A DNA stretch of 64,000 nt from Scyliorhinus canicula (taxonomy: Eukaryota), in the NCBI RefSeq assembly GCF_902713615.1, contig NC_052155.1, positions 55,506,315-55,570,314 of the forward strand, written 5' to 3'. Both the position numbers and the translations under genes were made by a program. How positions within the stretch are numbered: position 1 is the first letter of the stretch; every line of letters begins with the position of its first letter. The notes under the pieces are model-generated. The model was given only the letters and a program-made list of their open reading frames with translations, was not told the DNA's origin and did no database searches. Shown here one piece after another: positions 2,103 to 32,163 of this stretch.

Positions 2103-2144
2103 CAGGCAAAGCAAGGGGAGGGAGGGCTGGGCGCAGCCAGCTAC

Positions 2145-2323
2145 CTGGTAAAGGCGAAATACATGACACTGATGATAGTGAAAGTGAGCAGAGTGATGGT
2201 GTGAGGCTTGTAGAAGAAGTCTATGGTGATATCCTCCACTTGCTGCTCGTTGATCATACGGAAATGCAGTTTATAATTCACATCGTTCTTGCTGATTGTC
2301 CTGCTGCCTATACCGGACACCAT
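2145..2323 (-). CDS. PTDSS1: Phosphatidylserine synthase 1, first coding exon (179 bp)
   Basis: Translates [60 protein letters not shown], nearly identical to the vertebrate PTDSS1 N-terminus. GT donor (AG|GTAG) at 2144-2143, phase 2. Confidence 0.97.
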
Positions 2324-3000
2324 GGCTGCAGCGCTCCGCCCGACAAGTCGCGGCAGCCAGCAAGAGCCCAGAGAGCCAGAACACTCCAACGTCAACCAGT
2401 CTGAGACAGACAGAGGGGGGGGAATAACTAACCCTCAAATACAAAAACACCTCCTCCGGGCAACACTGGCAGGGCATTGATCAGACACACAACATGTACA
2501 TCTTTTACATATAAGGTGGGATATTTTGAAATTGCGAGATGCTGTCTATTAATCTAAAAGAAAGATGTGTGAAAAACACTCCCCTGTCGTTGATGGTGGA
2601 CTGTTCCATTCAGGCACACAGCTACATTTTAGAACGTCCTTGGAGCACGTGGGGAGGGGGAGTATCGACAGAGAAAAAAGACAGCTGATAGAAAGAGGAA
2701 TAGCTGAGAGAGAAATAGAAAGAGAGAAATAGCTGACACAGAGAAAATTAGCTGATGGAGGGAGAGAGAGATAACTGATAGATGAGAGAAATAGCTGATG
2801 TAGAGAGAAATAACTGATAACAAGGAGAGACTACTTTCCCAACCCAGTCTTGAGTCTGTAAGGAGGGGGGATACAGGCAAGCAAGAGAAATAGCCACTAT
2901 TCGGAGTGAGAGGAAGCTGAGAGATATTTTTGAATCCTACCTACAATCTGCCAGGTGAGAGAAACAGCTGATAAAGGGATTGTGGTGGTTGGGGGGTGGG

Positions 3001-6000
3001 CAGCCCCAGCCCCAGCCCCAGCCTGCTCTGATCAGCCCCAGCCCAGTCTGCTCTGATCAGCCCCAGCCCAATCTGCTCTGATTAGCCCCAGCCCAATCTG
3101 CTCTGATCAGCAAAGTGAGTGAAGGAGCTGATGGATAGAGGGGTAAACCTTCCCCAGCCCAGTCTGCTCTGATCAGCAGAGTGAAGGAGCTGATTGATAG
3201 AGGGGAAACCCTCCCCAGCCTAGTCTGATCTGATCAGCAGAGTGAGTGAAGGAGCTGATGGACAGAAGGGTGAACCTTCCCCAGCACAGACTGCTCTGAT
3301 CAGCAGAGTGAAGGAGCTGATGGATAGAGGGGTAAACCCTCCCCAGCCCAGACTGCTCTGATCAGCAGTGAAGGAGCTGATGGATAGAGGGGTAAACTTC
3401 CCCAGCCCAGACTGCTCTGATCAGCAGAGTGAAGAGCTGATGGATAGAGGGGTAACCTCCCCAGCCCAGACAGCTCTGATCAGCAAGTGAAGGAGCTGAT
3501 GGATAGAGGGTAAACCTTCCCCAGCCCAGACTGCTCTGTCAGCAGAGTGAAGGAGCTGATGGATAGAGGGGTAAACCCTTCCCCAGCCCAGTGCTCTGAT
3601 AGCAGAGTGAAGGAGCTGATGGATAGAGGGGTCCCTTCCCCAGCCCAGACTGCTCTGATCAGCAGAGTGAAGGAGCTGATGGATAGAGGGTAACCTTCCC
3701 CAGCCCAGTCTGCTCTGATCAGCAGAGTGAAGGAGCTGATGGATAGAGGGGTAAACCCCCAGCCCAGACTGCTCTGATCAGCAGTGAAGGAGCTGATGGA
3801 TAGAGGGGTAAGCCTCCCCAGCCCAGACTGCTCTGATCAGCAGAGAAGGAGCTGATGGATAGAGGGGTAAACCTCCCCAGCCCAGACTGCTCTGATCAGC
3901 AGAGTGAAGGAGCTGATGGATAGAGGGGTAAGCCTTCCCCAGCCCACTGCTCTGATCAGCAGTGAAGGAGCTGATGGATAGAGGGGTAAACTTCCCCAGC
4001 CCAGACTGCTCTGATCAGCAGAGTGAAGGAGCTGATGGATAGAGGGGTAACCTTCCCCAGCCCAGACTGCTCTGATCAGCAAGAGTGAAGGAGCTGATGG
4101 ATAGAGGGGTAACTTCCCCAGCCCAGACTGCTCTGATCAGCAGAGTGAAGGAGCTGATGGATAGGGGGTAAACCTCCCCAGCCCAGACTGCTCTGATCAG
4201 CAGAGTGAAGGAGCTGATGGATAGAGGGGTACCTTCCCCAGCCCACTGCTCTGATCAGCAGAGTGAAGGAGCTGATGGATAGAGGGTATCCCTTCCCCAG
4301 CCCAGTCTGCTCTGATCAGTAGAGTGAAGGAGCTGATGGATAGAGGGGTAAACCTTCCCCAGCCCAGACTGCTCGGATCAGCAGTGAAGGAGCTGATGGA
4401 TAGAGGGGTAAACCCTCCCCAGCCCAGACTGCTCTGATCAGCAGTGAAGGAGCTGATGGATAGAGGGTAAACCCTCCCCAGCCCACTGCTCTGATAGCAG
4501 TGAAGGAGCTGATGGATAGAGGGGTAAACTTCCCCAGCCCACTGCTCTGATCAGCAGAGTGAAGGAGCTGATGGATAGAGGGGTAACCTCCCCAGCCCAG
4601 ACAGCTGATCAGCAAAGTGAAGGAGCTGATGGATAGAGGGTAAACCTTCACCAGCCCAGACTGCTCTGTCAGCAGAGTGAAGGAGCTGATGGATAGAGGG
4701 GTAAACCTTCCCCAGCCCAGACTGCTCTGATCAGCAGAGTGTGTGAAGGAGCTGATGGATAGAGGGGTAAACCTTCCCCAGCCCAGACTGCTCTGGTCAG
4801 CAGAATGAAGGAGCTGATGGATAGAGGGGTAAGCCTTCCCCAGCCCAGTCTGCTCTGATCAGCAGAGTGTGTGAAGGAGCTGATGGATAGAGGGGTAAAC
4901 CCTCCCCAGCCCAGACTGCTCTGATCAGCAGAGTGAAGGAGCTGATGGATAGAGGGGTATCCCTTCCCCAGCCCAGTCTGCTCTGATCAGCAGAGTGAAG
5001 GAGCTGATGGATAGAGGGGTATCCCTTCCCCAGCCCAGTCTGCTCTGATCAGTAGAGTGAAGGAGCTGATGGATAGAGGGTAACCCTCCCCAGCCCAGAC
5101 TGCTCTGATCAGCAGTGAAGGAGCTGATGGATAGAGGGGTAAACCCTCCCCAGCCCACACTGCCGATAAGCAGTGAAGGAGCTGATGGATAGAGGGGTAA
5201 AACTTCCCCAGCCCAGACTGCTCTGATCAGCAGAGTGAAGGAGCTGATGGATAGAGGGGTAATTCCTCCCCAGCCCAGACAGCTCTGATCAGCAAAGTGA
5301 AGGAGCTGATGGATAGAGGGGTAAACCTTCCCCAGCCCAGACTGCTCTGATCAGCAGAGTGTGTGAAGGAGCTGATGGATAGAGGGGTAAACCCTCCCCA
5401 GCCCAGACTGCTCTGATCAGCAGAGTGAAGGAGCTGATGGATAGAGGGGTAATTCTCCCCAGCCCAGACAGCTCTGATCAGCAAAGTGAAGGAGCTGATG
5501 GATAGAGGGGTAAACCTTCCCCAGCCCAGACTCGATCAGCAGAGTGTGAAGGAGCTGATGGATAGAGGGGTAAACCTTCCCCAGCCCAGACTGCTCTGGT
5601 CAGCAGAGTGAAGGAGCTGATGGATAGAGGGGTAAGCCTTCCCCAGCCCAGTGCTCTGATCAGCAGAGTGTGTGAAGGAGCTGATGGATAGGGGGTAAGC
5701 CCTCCCCAGTCCAGACTGCTCTGATCAGCAGAGTGAAGGAGCTGATGGATAGAGGGGTATCCCTTCCCCAGCCCAGTCTGCTCTGATCAGCAGAGTGAAG
5801 GAGCTGATGGATAGAGGGGTATCCCTTCCCCAGCCCAGTCTGCTCTGATCAGTAGAGTGAAGGAGCTGATGGATAGAGGGGTAAACCTTCCCCAGCCCAC
5901 TGCTCTGATCAGCAGTGAAGGAGCTGATGGATAGAGGGGTAAACCCTCCCCAGCCCAGACTGCTCTGATCAGCAGTGAGGAGCTGATGGATAGAGGGGTA

Positions 6001-7316
6001 AACCCTTCCCCAGCCCAGACTGCTCTGATCAGCAGTGAAGGAGCTGATGGATAGAGGGGTAAACCCTCCCCAGCCCAGACTGCTCTGATCAGCAGAGTGA
6101 AGGAGCTGATGGATAGAGGGGTAAACCCTCCCCAGCCCAGACTGCTCTGATCAGCAGAGTGAAGGAGCTGATGGATAGAGGGGTAAGCCTTCCCCAGCCC
6201 AGTCTGCTCTGATCAGCAGAGTGTGTGAAGGAGCTGATGGATAGAGGGGTAAACCCTCCCCAGCCCAGTCTGCTCTGATCAGCAGTGACGGAGCTGATGG
6301 ATAGAGGGGTAAGCCTTCCCCAGCCCAGTCTGCTCTGATCAGCAGAGCGTGTGAAGGAGCTGATGGACAGAGGTGTAAACCTTTCCCAGCCCAGTCTGCT
6401 CTGATCAGCAGTGAAGGAGCTGATGGATAGAGGTGTAAACCTTTCCCAGCCCAGACTGCTCTGATCAGCAGTGTGTGTGAAGGAGCTGATGGATAGAGGG
6501 GTAAACCCTCCCCAGCCCAGTCTGCTCTGATCAGCAGAGTGAAGTAGCTGATGGATAGAGGGGTAAACCTCCCCAGCCCAGTCTGCTCTGATCAGCAGTG
6601 GAAGAAGCTGATGGATAGAGGGGTAAACCCTCCCCTGCCCAGTCTGCTCTGATCAGCAGAGTGAGTGAAGGGCTGATGGATCGAGGAGTAAGGCTTCCCC
6701 AGCCCAGACTGCTCTGATCAGCAGAGTGTGTGAAGGTTCTGATGGACAGAGGTGTAAACTGAAGGAGCTGATGGATAGAGGGGTAAACCGTCCCCAGCCC
6801 AGTCTACTCTGATCAGCAGAGTGTGTGAAGGAGCTGATGGATAGAGGGGTAAACCGTACCCAGCCCAGTCTACTCTGATCAGCAGTGTGTAAAGGAGCTG
6901 ATGGATAGAGGGGTAACCCTTCCCCTGCCCAGACTGCTCTGATCAGCAGAGTGTGTGAAGGAGCTGATGGATAGAGGGGTAAACCTTCCCCAGCCCAGTC
7001 TGCCCTGATCAGCAGTGACGGAGCTGATGGATAGAGGGGTAAACCTTCCCCAGCCCAGTCTGCTCTGATCAGCAGTGAGGGAGCTGATGGATAGAGGGGT
7101 AAACCCTCCCCAGCCCAGACTGCTCTGATCAGCAGTGTAGGAGTTGATGGATAGAGGGGTAAACCCTCCCCAGCCCAGTCTGCTCTGATCAGCAGTGAGG
7201 GAGCTGATGGATAGAGGGGTAAACCCTCCCCAGCCCAGACTGCACTGATCAGCAGTGAAGGAGCTGATGGATAGAGGGGTAACCCTTCTCCAGCCCAGAC
7301 TGCTCTGATCAGCAGC
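3001..7316. repeat. Minisatellite array, ~57-65 bp unit, about 70 copies
   Basis: Consensus cagcccagactgctctgatcagcagagtgaaggagctgatggatagaggggtaaaccttccc repeats from ~3090 to 7316. It is preceded by cagccc hexamers and ~24-bp subunits at 3001-3110. Confidence 0.98.
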
Positions 7317-7960
7317 AACGCCGAGGGGAGGAGCTCGAGTCTGTATTTTTATGTTATTTAGAGACCGTCGCTATTCCCGGCTCAGCTGCACTTCACTCCC
7401 CATGGGCCTCGAGACTTTGCCACTGGGTTTAAAAACGAATCTTCGCCTGATGTCGATGAGTGCATTCTGCCCGCCGAGGTACTGGCTTGTCTTAAACCCT
7501 GGGTGTGGGTGAGGCTGCGCTGTAAACACTCAGAGTTTTGTGTAAACAGTGAGCAATTTAATATGGGAGCAGCCAGTATTGGCTGTGGCAGGGGCAGTCT
7601 GTGCGGTCCGCTGCTGTTTATCTTCCCCGGAGCAGAGTGCACACATTGCTGTGTGTGCTTCCCGGTCGGAATCATTAAGGTGGGTACCCGGAGCGTGTTG
7701 GTTGATATTGTCGGAGAGGATTCACCTCAATACCCAGTTATTCTGACTGGCCTCTTTATTCACTGGTCCCATTCTGGAACATCTCTTCTTGCTCTCACAG
7801 GCCTTCGTTTCTTTCCCCAAGCCCGGTGCTCAGAAATTGGCACAATACTCCAGATTTAGGCCAATCCGGCTTGGCAAAGGCCCAGCAGCAAATTTATTTT
7901 CTGTTCTCGGGCCGACCTCCGAGTGCCTCTTCAAACAGACTACTCGACCCGCTGCGCCCC
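7317..7960. promoter_or_regulatory. CpG-retaining segment; candidate MTERF3/PTDSS1 promoter or non-coding first exon
   Basis: Unique sequence with many CpGs between the divergent genes. Plus-strand donor candidates are AAG|GTGGGT (7680) and GG|GTGAGG (7509). The TSS cannot be determined from sequence. Confidence 0.45.
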
Positions 7961-8527
7961 TTTAAGGACCTGTTTCTGTTCCTTCACCGCTTTTAGAATA
8001 GCCCCATTTCATTTATATTGACTCTCGCACATCCTACCAGCATTGTACGTAGCCATTTACGACACAGAAGGAGGCCATTTGGCCCATCGTGTATATGTTT
8101 GCGCTACTCAGAGCAAACCAGTCGTTTCCCCGCTCCATCACTGTAGCCCTGAAAGCCCTTCATGTATCCATCTGATTTCCTTTTGAAATGATTGATTGTG
8201 TTTACCACCCTCGTGCAGTATTTTACTTTCACCACCCTTGTGTAGCATAATAAAGGAGTTCTTCACTTTTGCACTGCATCTGTACCCAAAGTCTGTGTTC
8301 CCTAACCTTTGTCTACCTTACCTAAGCTGTAATAATCTTGTACACCTATTAATTTCCTTAACCACCTTTGTTCTACAGAGAACAACCCCAGCTCCTCCAG
8401 CCTAACCTTGCAGCTAAAATCCCTCATCCCTGGAATTATTCATAATTATTCAAGTAAATTACTTCTGCATCCTCTCAAGGACGCTTGCATCCTTTCTAAA
8501 GTGTGGTGACCAGAACTGTACACAATA

Positions 8528-10900
8528 TGCTCTAACCTCTCCAGTCCAGAAATCTATTGTTTGGAAAGACCGCTTGTCCGGAAATCTTTTCAGCAAACCC
8601 GGGAAACTCACCGGCTCGCCACTCGGCTGTTCGGGTGCTGCAGCAAATCGAGAAGGCATGGCCTCACCTAATCTACGGAGGCACGGGAATTTGTGAGCTG
8701 AGTTACTTTGTCATCTCATGCTGTTTTCCCCATGCTACACAGTCAGCTTTCACTTGCCATTTGCTACCCTCTGTTGCAGAGGTGCTTTTAAGTAGACCTA
8801 AGTATTCCCAGGGTATAGTTTAAAAAAAAATTTAAACTGTCACCATGACATCTAAGAAAAATGCAACAAAACGTAAACATGTCACACTGACAATATCGGA
8901 AAAGGTGGAAATCATAAAGAAACTAGATAAGGGTGCTTCGGTGAAAAGTTTGTGTGAGGTGTATGGTGTGGGTCTTTCAACAATTTACGACATCAGGAAA
9001 CAACGTGAAAAACTCTTTAAATTCTGTGCAGAAAGTGACACAGTTGAAGGAATTAGTGAGCGTAGAACACTGCATAGTGCTAAATCTGCTGACCATGATG
9101 GTGTGCTGTATGAATGGTTCCGACAGCACCGTAGTAAGGGGCTCCCTGTGTCAGGGACAATGCTTATGGAAAAGGCTAAAGAATTTCATACCGATTTGAG
9201 AATTAGTTCTGCCTGTGAGTACTCCCAAGGTTGGTTGCAAAAGTTCAAACATAGGCATGGGATTCACCTAAAAGCTACTGGCAAACAGCTTCTTGCTGAT
9301 AGAAAGGCTGTTGAATGTTATGTAACTGAGTTTGCGAAGTTGATGAAGGATGAGGGTCTTAGCCTAGAGCAGATATATAATGCGGACGAGACGGATGTTT
9401 TCTGGAGGTGCTTGCCACGAAGCACGCTTGCTGGTGCAGAGGGGACAGTGGTCCGCAATCGCAAAGAGTCAAAAGAAAGGCTCACAGTGCTCACATGTGC
9501 AAATGCTGCTGGAACACACAAGTGTAAACTCTTGGTTGTTGGTAAAAGTGCTAAACCTTGTGCTTTAAAAGGGATGAAAATCATGCCGGTGCTTTACGAG
9601 GCCAACAAATGGTCATGCGTCACTCAGGAGATCGTGAGTAACTGGTTCCATCATCATTTTGTCCCCGAGGCGCGTGCACACTCTCAAAAGATTGGGTTAG
9701 CTGCAGACTGCAAAATTGTGCTTCTTTTGGACAATTATTCAGCTCACCCCCCTGTAGAACAATTAGATGCTGACAATGTCTTCCCTACATATTTACCCAC
9801 TAGTTGCGCATCTTTAATTCAACCAATGGACCATGGAATTACTAAAGCAATGAAAAGCCACTACAGGAACAGTTTTTTACGTCGTCTTGTGAACAGCTAC
9901 AATACTGGTGGTGTTGATGCTTTTAAGAAGGCCGTCAATATCGAAGATGCTATTTTGTGTTTGGCAAATGCTTGGAACGGTGTCACTAGGAGAACCTTGC
10001 AAAATGCGTGGCATAAGTTGTGTCCTGCAAGTATGCTTAATGATGAGGATGCAGTGGAAAACATTGAAGGCTTTAATGTAAACAAGGCAAAGGCAGCTGA
10101 TCTCTTATGTTATGCCAAGCAAATGCAAAGTGTTGATTTAGACAAGCAAGATATTGTGACGTGGCTAAACGGTGAAGATGATGCTCCAGGTGTGCAGCAA
10201 GCAACAGATTCAGAGATAATAGAGATAGTTTTAGAGCCCAAGTCTGAGGATATTGGCAACAGCAAAACGGAAGATAATTTTTCTAATGAGATTAATGTGG
10301 AAGAGGGGATAAATCTAGCCTCTCGCTTCATTCGCTTTCTAGAGCAACAAAGTTTTATAAGCCATCAAGATGTAATGCATGTGCACCGAATCCAAGAGAA
10401 ATTAATAAAGAAGCAACTCAACCACAAGAAACAAATGAGGTTGCAACAAATGTTTGATGAAGTTGGAAAATCCTGTGCATGCACACCGTCAAAATCACCC
10501 AGTCCAATCCCATCAACCAGCAGACTGAATGAAACAAAGGAACCAGAATTAACTGCCCTTGCTGTTAATTATCACCCACTTTCTTCCATGCCCCTTCAAA
10601 CGATTAGTGCAAGAAAGCAGTGTATGGAATAGCCTGTTCCCTCAAAGTCATTGGTAGAATTTTGGTACAGTATCTGGGAGGAGAAACGTGGAAAATACAA
10701 TATTTGGACAAGTGAAACAAATTTAATTATTGCTTTATAACATTTTATCAATGTTTATGTTTCAGGTAAAATTTGAATCTACAGTATTTTCTGATCACAC
10801 ACTTGTGGTTAGGCATTCTAATGTCATTCTATATTCCAGAAAGTTCGGAAATCCATAAATGGCTTGATCCCAAGCATTCCAGACTGGAAAGGTTATAGTG
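8528..10900 (+). mobile_element. Full-length Tigger/pogo (Tc1-mariner superfamily) DNA transposon, 2373 bp
   Basis: TA at 8526-27 and 10901-02. The 24-bp TIRs (tgctctaacctctccagtccagaa vs cactataacctttccagtctggaa) match at 18/24. The flanks rejoin into a continuous CR1 sequence (cagaactgtacacaaTActctagttgtggcctaaccagag), and an uninterrupted paralogue is visible at 22272-22330. Confidence 0.93.
8845..10632 (+). CDS. Tigger/Jerky-like (TIGD2/JRKL/TIGD7-type) transposase-derived protein, 595 aa
   Basis: N-terminal CENP-B/psq HTH (RKHVTLTISEKVEIIKKLDKG..YGVGLSTIYDIRK) and a second HTH (LYEWFRQHRSKGLPVSG..GWLQKFKHRHGI). DDE_1 domain with NADET, LLLDN and QPMD (D..D32D). Kozak context gtcaccATG; no stops or frameshifts. 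Confidence 0.93.
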   Translation: MTSKKNATKRKHVTLTISEKVEIIKKLDKGASVKSLCEVYGVGLSTIYDIRKQREKLFKFCAESDTVEGISERRTLHSAKSADHDGVLYEWFRQHRSKGLPVSGTMLMEKAKEFHTDLRISSACEYSQGWLQKFKHRHGIHLKATGKQLLADRKAVECYVTEFAKLMKDEGLSLEQIYNADETDVFWRCLPRSTLAGAEGTVVRNRKESKERLTVLTCANAAGTHKCKLLVVGKSAKPCALKGMKIMPVLYEANKWSCVTQEIVSNWFHHHFVPEARAHSQKIGLAADCKIVLLLDNYSAHPPVEQLDADNVFPTYLPTSCASLIQPMDHGITKAMKSHYRNSFLRRLVNSYNTGGVDAFKKAVNIEDAILCLANAWNGVTRRTLQNAWHKLCPASMLNDEDAVENIEGFNVNKAKAADLLCYAKQMQSVDLDKQDIVTWLNGEDDAPGVQQATDSEIIEIVLEPKSEDIGNSKTEDNFSNEINVEEGINLASRFIRFLEQQSFISHQDVMHVHRIQEKLIKKQLNHKKQMRLQQMFDEVGKSCACTPSKSPSPIPSTSRLNETKEPELTALAVNYHPLSSMPLQTISARKQCME

Positions 10901-11450
10901 TACTCTAGTTGTGGCCTAACCAGAGCTGTATAAATGTTCAGCAGAATTTCCCTGCTTTTTTACTCAATGCCTCTATTTTATGAAGTTCAGGATCCCATAT
11001 GCTTTGCTAACTGCAGTCTCAATGTGTCCTGGCACCTTCAAAGATATATACACGTGCACCCTCGGGTCCCTTTATTCCTGTACACTATTTAGAAATGTGT
11101 CATTAAGTCTGTTCCTTCTTTCTATCTCTATGCCAAAATGTATCACCTCACCGTTTTATATATTAAATTCCATCTGCCAATTGTGTTCTCATTCAGCTAG
11201 TCTATCTAAGTCCTGTGGTGGTATGATCCTCACTGTTATCAAATCTGGAGGCGTGACAATGGCAAATTTTGAAATTTTACTCTATTCCAATATCTTAGTA
11301 ATTTATATATAGCAAAAATAATAATGGCCCTAGCACTGACCTTTTGGGGAAGACCACTATTGACCATTATCCAGTCTGAAAAATGACCATTTACCACAAC
11401 TCACCTTTTTTTCTGTTCCGAAACTATTTTTTTATCCAAGTGGACACTGG

Positions 11451-11697
11451 CTGCGTGGAGTTTGCACGTTCTCCCCGTGTCTGCGTGGGTTTCCTCCGGA
11501 TACTCCAGTTTCCTCCCACAGTCCCAAGATGTGCAGGTTAGGTGGATTGGCCATGCTAAATTGCCCCTTGGTGTCCAAAGGTTAGGTGGGGTTACGGGGA
11601 TAGGGTGGTGGCGTGGGCTTAGGTAGGGTGCTCTTTCCAAGGGCTGGTGCAGACTCGATGGGCCGAATGACCTCCTTCTGCACTGTAAATTCTATGA
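11451..11697 (+). mobile_element. 5'-truncated HE1/V-SINE-type SINE
   Basis: V-domain gtctgcgtgggtttcctccgg..ctcccacagtcc and tail ttctgcactgtaaattctatg, shared with other copies in the window. Confidence 0.85.
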
Positions 11698-12889
11698 CTG
11701 CCCTATAACTTTTCTGAATTAAATATATCAGAGAGTCCTGTGGTCTTAACACTGACCCCTGGGCAAACATCATTGCATACTCCCCTCCCGTCTGGAAGAA
11801 CAGTTGTTTACCAGGACTCTACTTTCTTTACCTTAGCCAATTATGTATACATGCAACTGCTGTCGCTTTATTCCCATGGGCTTCAATATTGCTAACATGT
11901 CTATAATGTGGTGCTTTATTATGCATTTTGAAAATCCATTTATATCAGCTGCACTGCCGTTATCAACCCTGTCTGTTACTACATTAAGGACATTAACAAA
12001 GTTAGTCAAACACGATTTGCCTTAAACAAATCTGTGTGGACGTTTGTTTATTAATCTATTTGTTTCCAAGTGCCAACTCATTTTGTTTTATTTTTGTCTA
12101 GTCTTGTCATCAACGGCATTATGTGGCTTTCAGTTGTTGGCATCATCCCTCTCCGCAATTTTAAACAGGGATGCAATATTTCCAAGTTTCCTATCCTCTG
12201 GCACCACCCCCACATACAAGGAAGATTGGAAGATTGTGGCCAGTATCTCCTGTAATTTCTAGTAAAGCTTCCATCACTACTCTAGGGGCCAGCAGAACAT
12301 CCTCCTCCGACGAGATCTCCTGCAACCCCCTCCCAACAATCTATACCCCCTCCCCCGCTCCCCCATGTACCTGCCGTAGTCAAAGGACCACAACTGTGGC
12401 TTCTAGCCCTTCCGCAGAGAGATGGCCCATCCATGCTGATGGTTTTTTTGAGATTAAGGAAACACTGTTTAAAATGTGCATCAATGTCTCCTAACTACAT
12501 AGGCAGCTCCCACCCCTGACAGTGGTGGAGCACCTTCTATTGGCCCTCCAGCCTTGGAAGCTTGTCTGCGGTCGGTAATTGGATGGTGAATGGACACACC
12601 GGCTACTTGTTAAAAATCGTGTTGGCCATCAGGGTCATATCATCAGGGACGTAGTGCGGGGACCTGAAATTATATCCACTCCAGGGTCGTGACCTCAGAA
12701 AATCCAGCCCATGGTTTCCATTTCATATTTTGCTTTACTGTTTCAAATCTGTAAGTATTCAAAGGGGAAATGTTTTGAAACATTTAAAATTGTCTTTTAA
12801 CATAACCGTTACCAAACGTTTTATGGGTACAACTTGATGTTTACTTATCAAAATTTTTTGTTTACAGGATCATGGTAAATTGAACAAAA

Positions 12890-13217
12890 ATGTCCTCACT
12901 GTGCCATCGCATATGTTACCGTTGGTCTTCATTGAGAATCACTGGACTGGTTTTCTCTTCAAAGCAAGAAACAAAGGTGTTGCCTAAAGCATCATACAGT
13001 CTTCGATCTTGGTCTGGTTTAAATACACATCCATGCCTCTTAACTCAAAAACTCTGGAGGTTGGAAAATCCGAACTTGAATTCTTCAGCAGCAGACTCAC
13101 CACCAAGTGAGGAAGATGGCACTGCAAGGTTCACAGAAAGCAGTATTTTGCTAAACACAAACCAAAACCATGGCAAAACAGAACCATCTAGACTAGCCAT
13201 AGACGTACAACCTATGG
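12890..13217 (+). CDS. MTERF3: Mitochondrial transcription termination factor 3, first coding exon (328 bp)
   Basis: tttacAG acceptor at 12866-67, ATG at 12890, Arg/Ser/Leu-rich presequence-like N-terminus. G|GTAAGC donor at 13218, phase 1, in frame with the next exon. Confidence 0.85.
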
Positions 13218-14219
13218 GTAAGCAGATAGAAAAGCTGTATTTTTTGGTGTTTATAGTAACAAAAAAATGTAGCTTGGATTTGATTTTAACCAACCGTCAG
13301 CTGGCTCCTAAACTCTGGAATTCTCTTCCAAAATCCATGTATCTTTCTTTTGTCTTCCATTAATCAAGTCTGTCTTCTGGCTCAGTGTCAAACCTTATCT
13401 GATAGCACTCCTATAAAACTCCTTGAAATATCTTATTCTGCTAAAGATGCTGTGTAACTGCTTCTTGTCAGTGAGGCAGCCTTTAGTTATCCATAATGAA
13501 CTGGGAGCACAAATTCAATTGTCTTCTGGTGCCTTGCCCAAATATCAGTTATAAAAATAAAAAAAAAAGCCTCTCTGTTCAATATCCATGGACTGCTTGA
13601 TTAACTGAGGCCACTGCAGCTGAGTATAAACCTCTTCTCACCTGGGATCTGTGCATGTGTGTTACTATCACCTCTGTATGGTCGTGATGTGGCTAAGTCC
13701 AAAGCAGAGACTGAAACTGTGCAGTTCAACACATACGAGATGGCAGCTTTAGAGATACATAAAATGTATATAGTAATACCTGCAATGACTCTGATTTATG
13801 TGAGTGAATGATGCATCATATAATATTTTTACCCATTGAGCTGGAAGAATGATGCATTTGCTGGTCCCAGTCATGTTCAACAGAGCTATGTACTTCTTTT
13901 AAAATAACTTCCTGGTGACATCATCTGCTGCGGGTCGAGAACAAATGTCAGCAAAGCCATAAGAAAAAGAAAACCAAGCTCTAGGCTTTATTACTAGAGG
14001 AATAGAATTGAAAAATTGGGAATTTATGCTAAACCTGTATCAAACTCTTGGTTAGATCAGACTTTGAATACCGCATGCAGTTATGGTCACCACGTTATAT
14101 GAAAAAACTATACAAGAACAATTTAGCACCTTTTAAAGTAGTAAAACATCCCAGGATGCTTCACAAAAGCATTACGGATGAAGAATGGTTCCAGGAGACA
14201 CAAGAGAATACTAGGTCAT

Positions 14220-31763: not shown

Positions 31764-31925
31764 GTTTGCCGGATTGAGTTGGGATTTCGTGAAAATGAAA
31801 TCCAGCACATGGTAACTAACGTCCCCAAACTCCTCCTGGCTAGTAAGAAAAAAGTGACTAGATTATTTGATTACTTGCACAATACCATGGGTATCCCCCA
31901 CCACCTAATTACAAAATTTCCTCAG
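31764..31925 (+). CDS. MTERF3: MTERF3 coding exon 6 (162 bp)
   Basis: Encodes [54 protein letters not shown]; AG/GT junctions. Confidence 0.96.
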
Positions 31926-32163
31926 GTAAATATAACTGCTTAAATTTAATATGAATGGCTTTTCTTGTCTTTTAGGGACTGTTCAGCTGAAGACATAATT
32001 ATTATTCTTTTGATGGGTACTAACTTTTTGACTTTGGTCATTTTGAATTTGGTAATCTTTGGTAAAAGAATGTGCATTTATGTTATCTAAAAACATTCTT
32101 AGAACTGTGTATATTGAAAATTAACTTGTGACACCTAATAAAAAATTTTGTCTTTCCCCCTAG

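Follow-up and report, generated by a model that had tools for sequence, protein, structure and literature searches.

We analysed a window of 64,000 nucleotides (nt) from the shark Scyliorhinus canicula (contig NC_052155.1), in which a transposase open reading frame (ORF) lies between the genes PTDSS1 and MTERF3. The ORF belongs to a Tigger/Jerky-like transposon of the pogo type, and its domestication within the leader intron of MTERF3 is well supported and, in our judgement, very probable. That is, a pogo transposon would have entered the 5′ leader intron of MTERF3 at a TA dinucleotide, with its ORF in the same direction as the gene, and this copy would then have become a host gene. The ORF is under purifying selection while the rest of the transposon family decayed, and its product would be a protein of its own, in which two CENP-B-type helix-turn-helix domains are combined with a DDD domain that is still complete. 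As to its expression, the most likely mode, which we favour with some reserve, is that the transposase shares the promoter and leader exon of MTERF3 by way of an acceptor that came with the ancestral transposon.

A complete transposase and its transposon

The 595-amino acid (aa) ORF (Table 1) is a complete pogo/Tigger transposase. The protein contains the Pfam domains CENP-B_N (residues 9-60), HTH_Tnp_Tc5 (87-143) and DDE_1 (210-389), with E-values of 6.5e-10, 2e-14 and 1.5e-42, respectively, and the catalytic residues D181, D296 and D329 are all present. Among the compared sequences D181 is invariant (12/12), and D296 and D329 are N in Stegostoma only. The other hallmarks of pogo/Tigger elements were found along with this domain set and the D-D-D triad, namely inverted repeats with a TA duplication and multiple genomic copies. 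The best matches outside sharks are 'jerky' proteins (46-50% identity), and automatic annotation names the orthologues 'jerky protein homolog'. The role of the protein is likely to be sequence-specific DNA binding, and its targets may perhaps be the numerous short copies that its family has left in the genome.

The element itself sits within an older shark repeat. Its ends were set by aligning short non-autonomous copies of the family that resemble miniature inverted-repeat transposable elements, the consensus of which starts CACTGTAACCTCTCCAG. The first bases of the left inverted repeat are mutated, and about 19 of the 27 bases match between the left and right repeats when counted by eye. A whole-genome DNA search with the element gave 54 matches, all of them old copies (66-81% identity) that are fragmentary, many being short and internally deleted. 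The motif TTTTGAGCAGACCC occurs twice in the 5′ part of the element, at 8584-8600 following the inverted repeat and at 8785-8800 just past a splice acceptor described below. It was also found in decayed family copies, and the motifs are probably subterminal repeats bound by the transposase. A second, abundant Tigger family is present in the S. canicula genome (31-34% protein identity, 984 first-look candidates); many of its copies have stop-free frames of 540-570 aa, and this family may have been active recently.

Orthology, selection and age of the insertion

Intact orthologues of 595-598 aa were identified in six other species belonging to three orders, and overall there are nine intact ORFs in seven species. 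Identity to the S. canicula protein is 95% in S. torazame (595 aa), 83% in Carcharodon carcharias (598 aa), 72-73% in Chiloscyllium punctatum, C. plagiosum and Hemiscyllium ocellatum (597 aa) and 72% in Stegostoma tigrinum (596 aa, flagged as low quality). The order PTDSS1 - transposase - MTERF3 is held in these six species: the orthologue is always on the same strand and just 5′ of the mTERF gene, and PTDSS1 (Pfam PSS), divergently oriented, lies upstream of the transposase wherever the flank reaches far enough. Furthermore, Stegostoma DNA aligns through the element and on into the old repeat at both flanks, and the insertion is therefore orthologous. In a protein tree the shark transposases form one clade (100/100) whose branching follows the species tree, apart from a clade (100/99) made up of rodent JRK and skate JRK-like proteins. 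The shark gene is therefore not an orthologue of JRK. Hemiscyllium ocellatum and C. punctatum each have the transposase duplicated in tandem, the two copies lying near PTDSS1 and near MTERF3, respectively. Both are intact and 597 aa long, most of their differences fall at the N- and C-termini, and their central parts are identical, suggesting gene conversion.

Between S. canicula and Stegostoma the ORF shows 81% identity; three indels keep the frame, and a fourth, a deletion of 1 nt in Stegostoma (at 9324), does not. The non-coding parts are 58-70% identical and indel-rich. Differences affect 16, 13 and 27% of codon positions 1, 2 and 3, respectively. For this one species pair the ratio of nonsynonymous to synonymous substitution rates (dN/dS, Nei-Gojobori) is 0.246 at a dS of 0.585, the DNA-binding part and the DDE domain giving 0.13 and 0.30. 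A neutral transposon relic, with an ORF that has stayed open by chance, would agree with the still recognisable inverted repeats and TA duplications and with the frameshift in Stegostoma, but given nine intact ORFs across seven species, a dN/dS of 0.25 and own-genome family copies that are fragmentary and 66-81% identical, we consider it extremely improbable.

Two observations nonetheless speak against domestication. The Stegostoma sequence combines the frameshift with the substitutions D296N and D329N, so that this species may no longer need catalysis, or may not need the gene at all; and for Mustelus and Cetorhinus a search, made in the annotation only, returned no orthologue, which may reflect losses in one or the other. 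The Stegostoma branch in the protein tree is no longer than those of its relatives.

In the more distant species, no transposase homology was detected anywhere in the Heptranchias locus (45 kb), and in Heterodontus the coding starts of PTDSS1 and MTERF3 are just 2.4 kb apart, an interval into which the element cannot fit. On both grounds the insertion is most simply dated to an ancestor shared by the carpet, mackerel and ground sharks. Going by approximate shark divergence times, the domestication is presumably of the order of 200 million years old.

The host gene and its leader exons

A first-pass annotation of the window had named the downstream gene MTERF3. This identity is borne out by the mTERF gene found at an equal offset in the orthologous loci, by an exon with a Pfam mTERF match (31776-31928) and by the S. 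canicula MTERF3 protein, which maps onto the same contig as the window. A representative search with the MTERF3 N-terminus gave a single match, in Narcine. The exon with the MTERF3 start codon (ATG 12890), referred to here as exon 2, begins after an AG at 12866-67, as proposed and as read directly in the DNA, and both its acceptor and its donor are kept in Stegostoma and Heptranchias. The further proposal that this exon needs an upstream leader agrees with models in relatives, which join positions equivalent to 7478, 8692 or about 8241-8450 to 12868.

The S. torazame RefSeq isoform X1 of MTERF3 starts with MSMSAFC, which maps at 100% to 7450-7470 and resumes at 12868, implying the junction 7478^12868; the 17 extra residues of this isoform correspond to 29 + 22 nt. 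An older S. torazame model (GCB63732) has the N-terminus MASPNVRRHGNL, which maps at 92% to 8658-8693, that is, inside the element, and then resumes at 12869. The donor at 8693 is not conserved in Stegostoma. Lastly, the old repeat to the left of the element (equivalent of about 8241-8450) supplies the start of C. punctatum isoforms X3-X6, which continue with exon 2. All of these upstream exons precede the ORF, and the ORF is therefore located in an intron of MTERF3, in sense orientation. The first-pass annotation had specified in advance that a start of the MTERF3 transcript downstream of 10900 would tell against its reading; the relatives' leader exons lie before the ORF, and by these models the start is not downstream of 10900.

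Some features of these leaders are of note in their own right. In C. punctatum X3-X6 the exonised old repeat gives at most 98 N-terminal residues, and the start of exon 2 is read in a frame different from that of canonical MTERF3, which is rejoined later. A start of the 516-aa C. punctatum MTERF3 at an ATG in leader block 1b was considered and dropped, since this protein maps to the old repeat left of the element. The TGA at 12880-82 is in frame in S. canicula, and all such MTERF3 leaders are therefore non-coding there. The same TGA is shared by Stegostoma; in S. torazame it is GGA, which opens N-terminal extensions (models of 432, 434 and 421 aa).

Splice sites and mode of expression

Splice sites were scored with a rough position-weight matrix, over the 353 GT and 335 AG sites in 7316-11453 and 11500-13300. 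The donor at 7680 ranked first and that at 10766 fourth among GT sites, and the acceptors at 8778 and 12866 ranked second and fourth among AG sites. The first-pass annotation had drawn attention to three of these sites around the transposase, and they were found as described on direct reading: the donor AAG/GTGGGT (GT 7680-81); the acceptor AG at 8778-79, which follows a pyrimidine-rich tract and precedes by 65 nt (8780-8844, ATG-free) the transposase ATG at 8845 with an A at -3; and the donor-like CAG/GTAAAA (GT 10766-67), 133 nt past the stop. The acceptor at 8778-79 and the donor at 10766 are both inside the transposon and both part of the family consensus. The acceptor AG is kept after a CT-rich tract in Stegostoma and in four of the five decayed family copies (consensus TTTTGCAG), and this recurrence of AG and tract shows that the acceptor goes back to the ancestor of the family. 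At the position of the 7680 donor, ACG/GTGAGT of Stegostoma aligns. An intron within the 5′ part of the transposon, from a donor near 8693 to the acceptor at 8779, was discarded, there being no conserved donor among the family copies.

In the mode that we favour, transcripts would start in the MTERF3 leader region (7450-7679), and the leader would be spliced to one of two acceptors, that of MTERF3 exon 2 (12868) or the transposon-borne one (8779/8780). The latter choice would yield an mRNA whose first good ATG is that of the transposase. With exon 1a spliced to 8780, the transcript would carry an upstream ORF of 14 codons, closed ahead of ATG 8845. A fusion protein with MTERF3 is possible in no case: no single ORF joins host coding and transposase sequence, and stops are present in all frames of 8780-8844. 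The suggestion of the first-pass annotation that the transposase is an exon trap thus holds for the sense ORF in an MTERF3 intron and for the conserved acceptor and 7680 donor, but not for a fusion to host coding sequence. Similarly, its exon 1-MTERF3 form is supported by the upstream exons joined to exon 2 in relatives, but with the donor at 7479 rather than at 7680: in the closest relative the only annotated join between exons 1 and 2 uses 7478/7479 and not 7679/7680.

Besides the conserved acceptor and leader donor and the precedents known from other hosts, two lines of evidence are consistent with splicing of the leader to the transposase. First, NCBI lists two C. punctatum transposases under MTERF3, where they are called isoforms X1 and X2 and account for eight protein accessions; filed in this way, their transcripts are implied to share exon structure with MTERF3. 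Second, 18 sequencing runs from six studies (each of 59-216 Mb of contigs, for a genome of 4.2 Gb), which we guess to be RNA, contain 60-100% of the sampled words of 8780-10765, and the shallow runs, whose type is likewise guessed, contain about 35-62% of the remaining words of 7400-13200. An expressed exon would be expected to give such a pattern. The first 152 aa of the protein, searched against Logan RNA contig fragments, gave no shark match.

On the other side several points count against sharing of the MTERF3 promoter. The RNA nature of the 18 runs is a guess. The 7680 donor is used by no annotated MTERF3 model among those examined. No canonical AATAAA is found from the stop to 11453, and in 10633-10900 there is neither AATAAA nor ATTAAA, only the variants AATACA (10694) and CATAAA (10854). 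In S. torazame, Carcharodon, Stegostoma, Hemiscyllium and C. plagiosum the transposase is annotated as a separate gene. Finally, a block at about 8626-8665 in the 5′ part of the element is nearly identical in Stegostoma and could act as an internal promoter.

The last two points lead to an alternative in which the transposase is a nested independent gene, with its own promoter in the 5′ part of the element or in the adjoining old repeat, the acceptor being an unused relic of the family. The separate annotation in five species and the strongly conserved 5′ block fit such a gene, as does the S. torazame model exon within 8658-8692, a hint of transcription in the 5′ part of the element; moreover, known JRK/TIGD genes are mostly single-exon. 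Set against this, transposase transcripts are grouped with MTERF3 in C. punctatum, the acceptor AG and the leader donor are retained across a dS of 0.585, and Tigger elements that lie in sense within introns are known to be exonised readily. We regard the nested gene as rather unlikely, though an alternative to be reckoned with.

The first-pass annotation had also envisaged a bicistronic form, in which 8780-10765 would be an internal cassette exon; the transposase ORF would then precede that of MTERF3 on one transcript, which nonsense-mediated decay would probably target. The donor-like CAG/GTAAA that it requires is present and ranks fourth, its GT is preserved in Stegostoma, no canonical poly(A) signal lies ahead of it, and the naming of the C. 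punctatum isoforms is compatible. The motif is merely the family consensus, however, and its exonic side is weakened in Stegostoma (CCA/GT). This form is possible but unsupported, and we think it quite improbable. The same applies, with small odds in our view, to a broader scenario in which the Tigger family would by its design be a natural gene trap, the ORF being flanked by an acceptor on its 5′ side and a donor on its 3′ side, so that transposase would be made mainly from sense intronic copies. One such copy would have been fixed in sharks, where a catalytically complete transposase would be co-transcribed with MTERF3, partly in a bicistronic, decay-sensitive isoform tuning MTERF3 output.

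Other features of the locus

The segment at 7400-8200, described in the first-pass annotation as CpG-rich, is so relative to its surroundings, but the enrichment is only moderate: the observed/expected ratio is 0.57-0.76, compared to 0.23-0.3 in 10400-11400 and as little as 0.03-0.1 in an upstream minisatellite. This minisatellite (3086-7315, 4.2 kb) consists of about 60 copies of a 62-nt unit matching at 86-89%, is nearly CpG-free, and lies between the 5′ end of PTDSS1 (about 2133-2653, minus strand) and the MTERF3 leader. The equivalent interval in Stegostoma is about 1.7 kb and does not contain such an array.

An AT-rich non-coding block at 12709-12800, about 70-160 nt 5′ of the exon 2 acceptor, is highly conserved in Scyliorhinus, Stegostoma and Heptranchias, with conserved stretches including TAAGTATTCAAAGGG and TTTGAAACATTTAAAATT, and may be an intronic regulatory element. 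The block was also considered as a proximal first exon with a GTAAGT donor; as a conserved donor this was rejected, the GT being missing in Heptranchias.

Table 1. Features of the transposase-MTERF3 locus of S. canicula (positions in the window)
Feature	Position	Strand	Basis or remarks
MTERF3 leader exon 1a, end; donor GAG/GTACTG at 7479	7450-7478	+	N-terminus of S. torazame MTERF3 isoform X1
MTERF3 leader block 1b, conserved; ends in donor AAG/GTGGGT	7606-7679	+	69% identity to Stegostoma, region otherwise unalignable; no ATG
TA target-site duplication, left copy	8526-8527	.	Alignment of short family copies
Tigger/Jerky-like pogo element, 2,373 bp	8528-10900	+	Own-genome copies (66-81% identity) stop at the same limits
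Left terminal inverted repeat	8528-8554	+	Consensus of family copies
Possible alternative leader exon in 5′ part of element; donor TTT/GTGAGC at 8693	8658-8692	+	Older S. torazame model GCB63732
Pyrimidine tract and predicted acceptor (AG 8778-79)	8749-8779	+	Conserved in Stegostoma and family copies
Leader before transposase ATG, 65 nt	8780-8844	+	No ATG; stops in all frames; 77% identity to Stegostoma
Transposase-derived gene, 595 aa	8845-10632	+	Pfam domains, orthologues, dN/dS
Donor-like CAG/GTAAAA (GT 10766-67)	10763-10771	+	Family consensus TTTCAGGTAAAT; Stegostoma CCA/GTAAAT
Right terminal inverted repeat	10874-10900	-	Alignment of family copies
TA target-site duplication, right copy	10901-10902	.	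Alignment of family copies
MTERF3 exon 2	12868-13217	+	ATG 12890; in-frame TGA 12880-82 in leader; proteins of relatives map here
MTERF3 exon coding for mTERF repeat	31776-31928	+	Pfam PF02536, 30.3 bits, above cut-off

Discussion

We found no paper in the literature on the shark transposase-MTERF3 locus, and the closest parallels come from other systems. In the survey of Cosby et al. (bioRxiv 10.1101/2020.05.07.082677), eight of nine captured transposases used an acceptor that the transposon had brought along, situated just 5′ of the ORF. The shark locus resembles these captures (e.g. KRABINER and SETMAR) in the sense placement of a DNA transposon within an intron of the host, in the retention of the parental host transcript and in an acceptor just 5′ of the transposase ORF that goes back to the ancestral transposon. 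Unlike them, it fuses no host coding exon, the upstream exons of S. canicula being non-coding, so that only the promoter and leader would be shared, and the shark gene retains the whole transposase and not the DNA-binding domain alone. That survey covers tetrapods, and sharks fall outside it.

The first-pass annotation had likened the locus to PGBD3 in ERCC6/CSB. The likeness extends to an intact transposase ORF in a host intron behind an acceptor, with a host gene that is still expressed. It does not extend to the rest: the shark element is a pogo and not a piggyBac, its ORF is not joined to host coding sequence and yields nothing like the CSB fusion protein, canonical AATAAA poly(A) signals are missing behind it, and the shark acceptor is a predicted one.

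With JRK, JRKL, TIGD1-7 and CENP-B, the domesticated pogo transposases of vertebrates, the shark proteins have in common the CENP-B_N, HTH_Tnp_Tc5 and DDE_1 architecture. They differ in that they group by themselves in the tree, outside the JRK clade of mammals and skates, and are encoded at another locus. The inverted repeats, TA duplications and same-family relics show an insertion that is separate from JRK/TIGD and specific to sharks. Another comparison is offered by Ilik et al. 2024 (PMC10901741), according to whom SAFB holds down the exonisation of sense intronic Tigger elements. There, as in the shark, a sense-strand intronic Tigger is a potential gene trap, but those are dead human elements that are exonised on SAFB depletion, whereas the shark ORF is under selection.

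The locus adds a cartilaginous-fish case to transposase domestication, and one in which the steps are unusually legible, given that the inverted repeats, the target duplication, the decayed copies, the empty site of an outgroup and a tandem duplicate of later date can all still be seen. It differs from the known captures in that the transposon's own acceptor may open a host promoter without a fusion protein. If the junctions were confirmed, the transposase-capture model would extend from exon shuffling to promoter sharing, and the expression of a DNA-binding protein would be tied to a regulator of mitochondrial gene expression.

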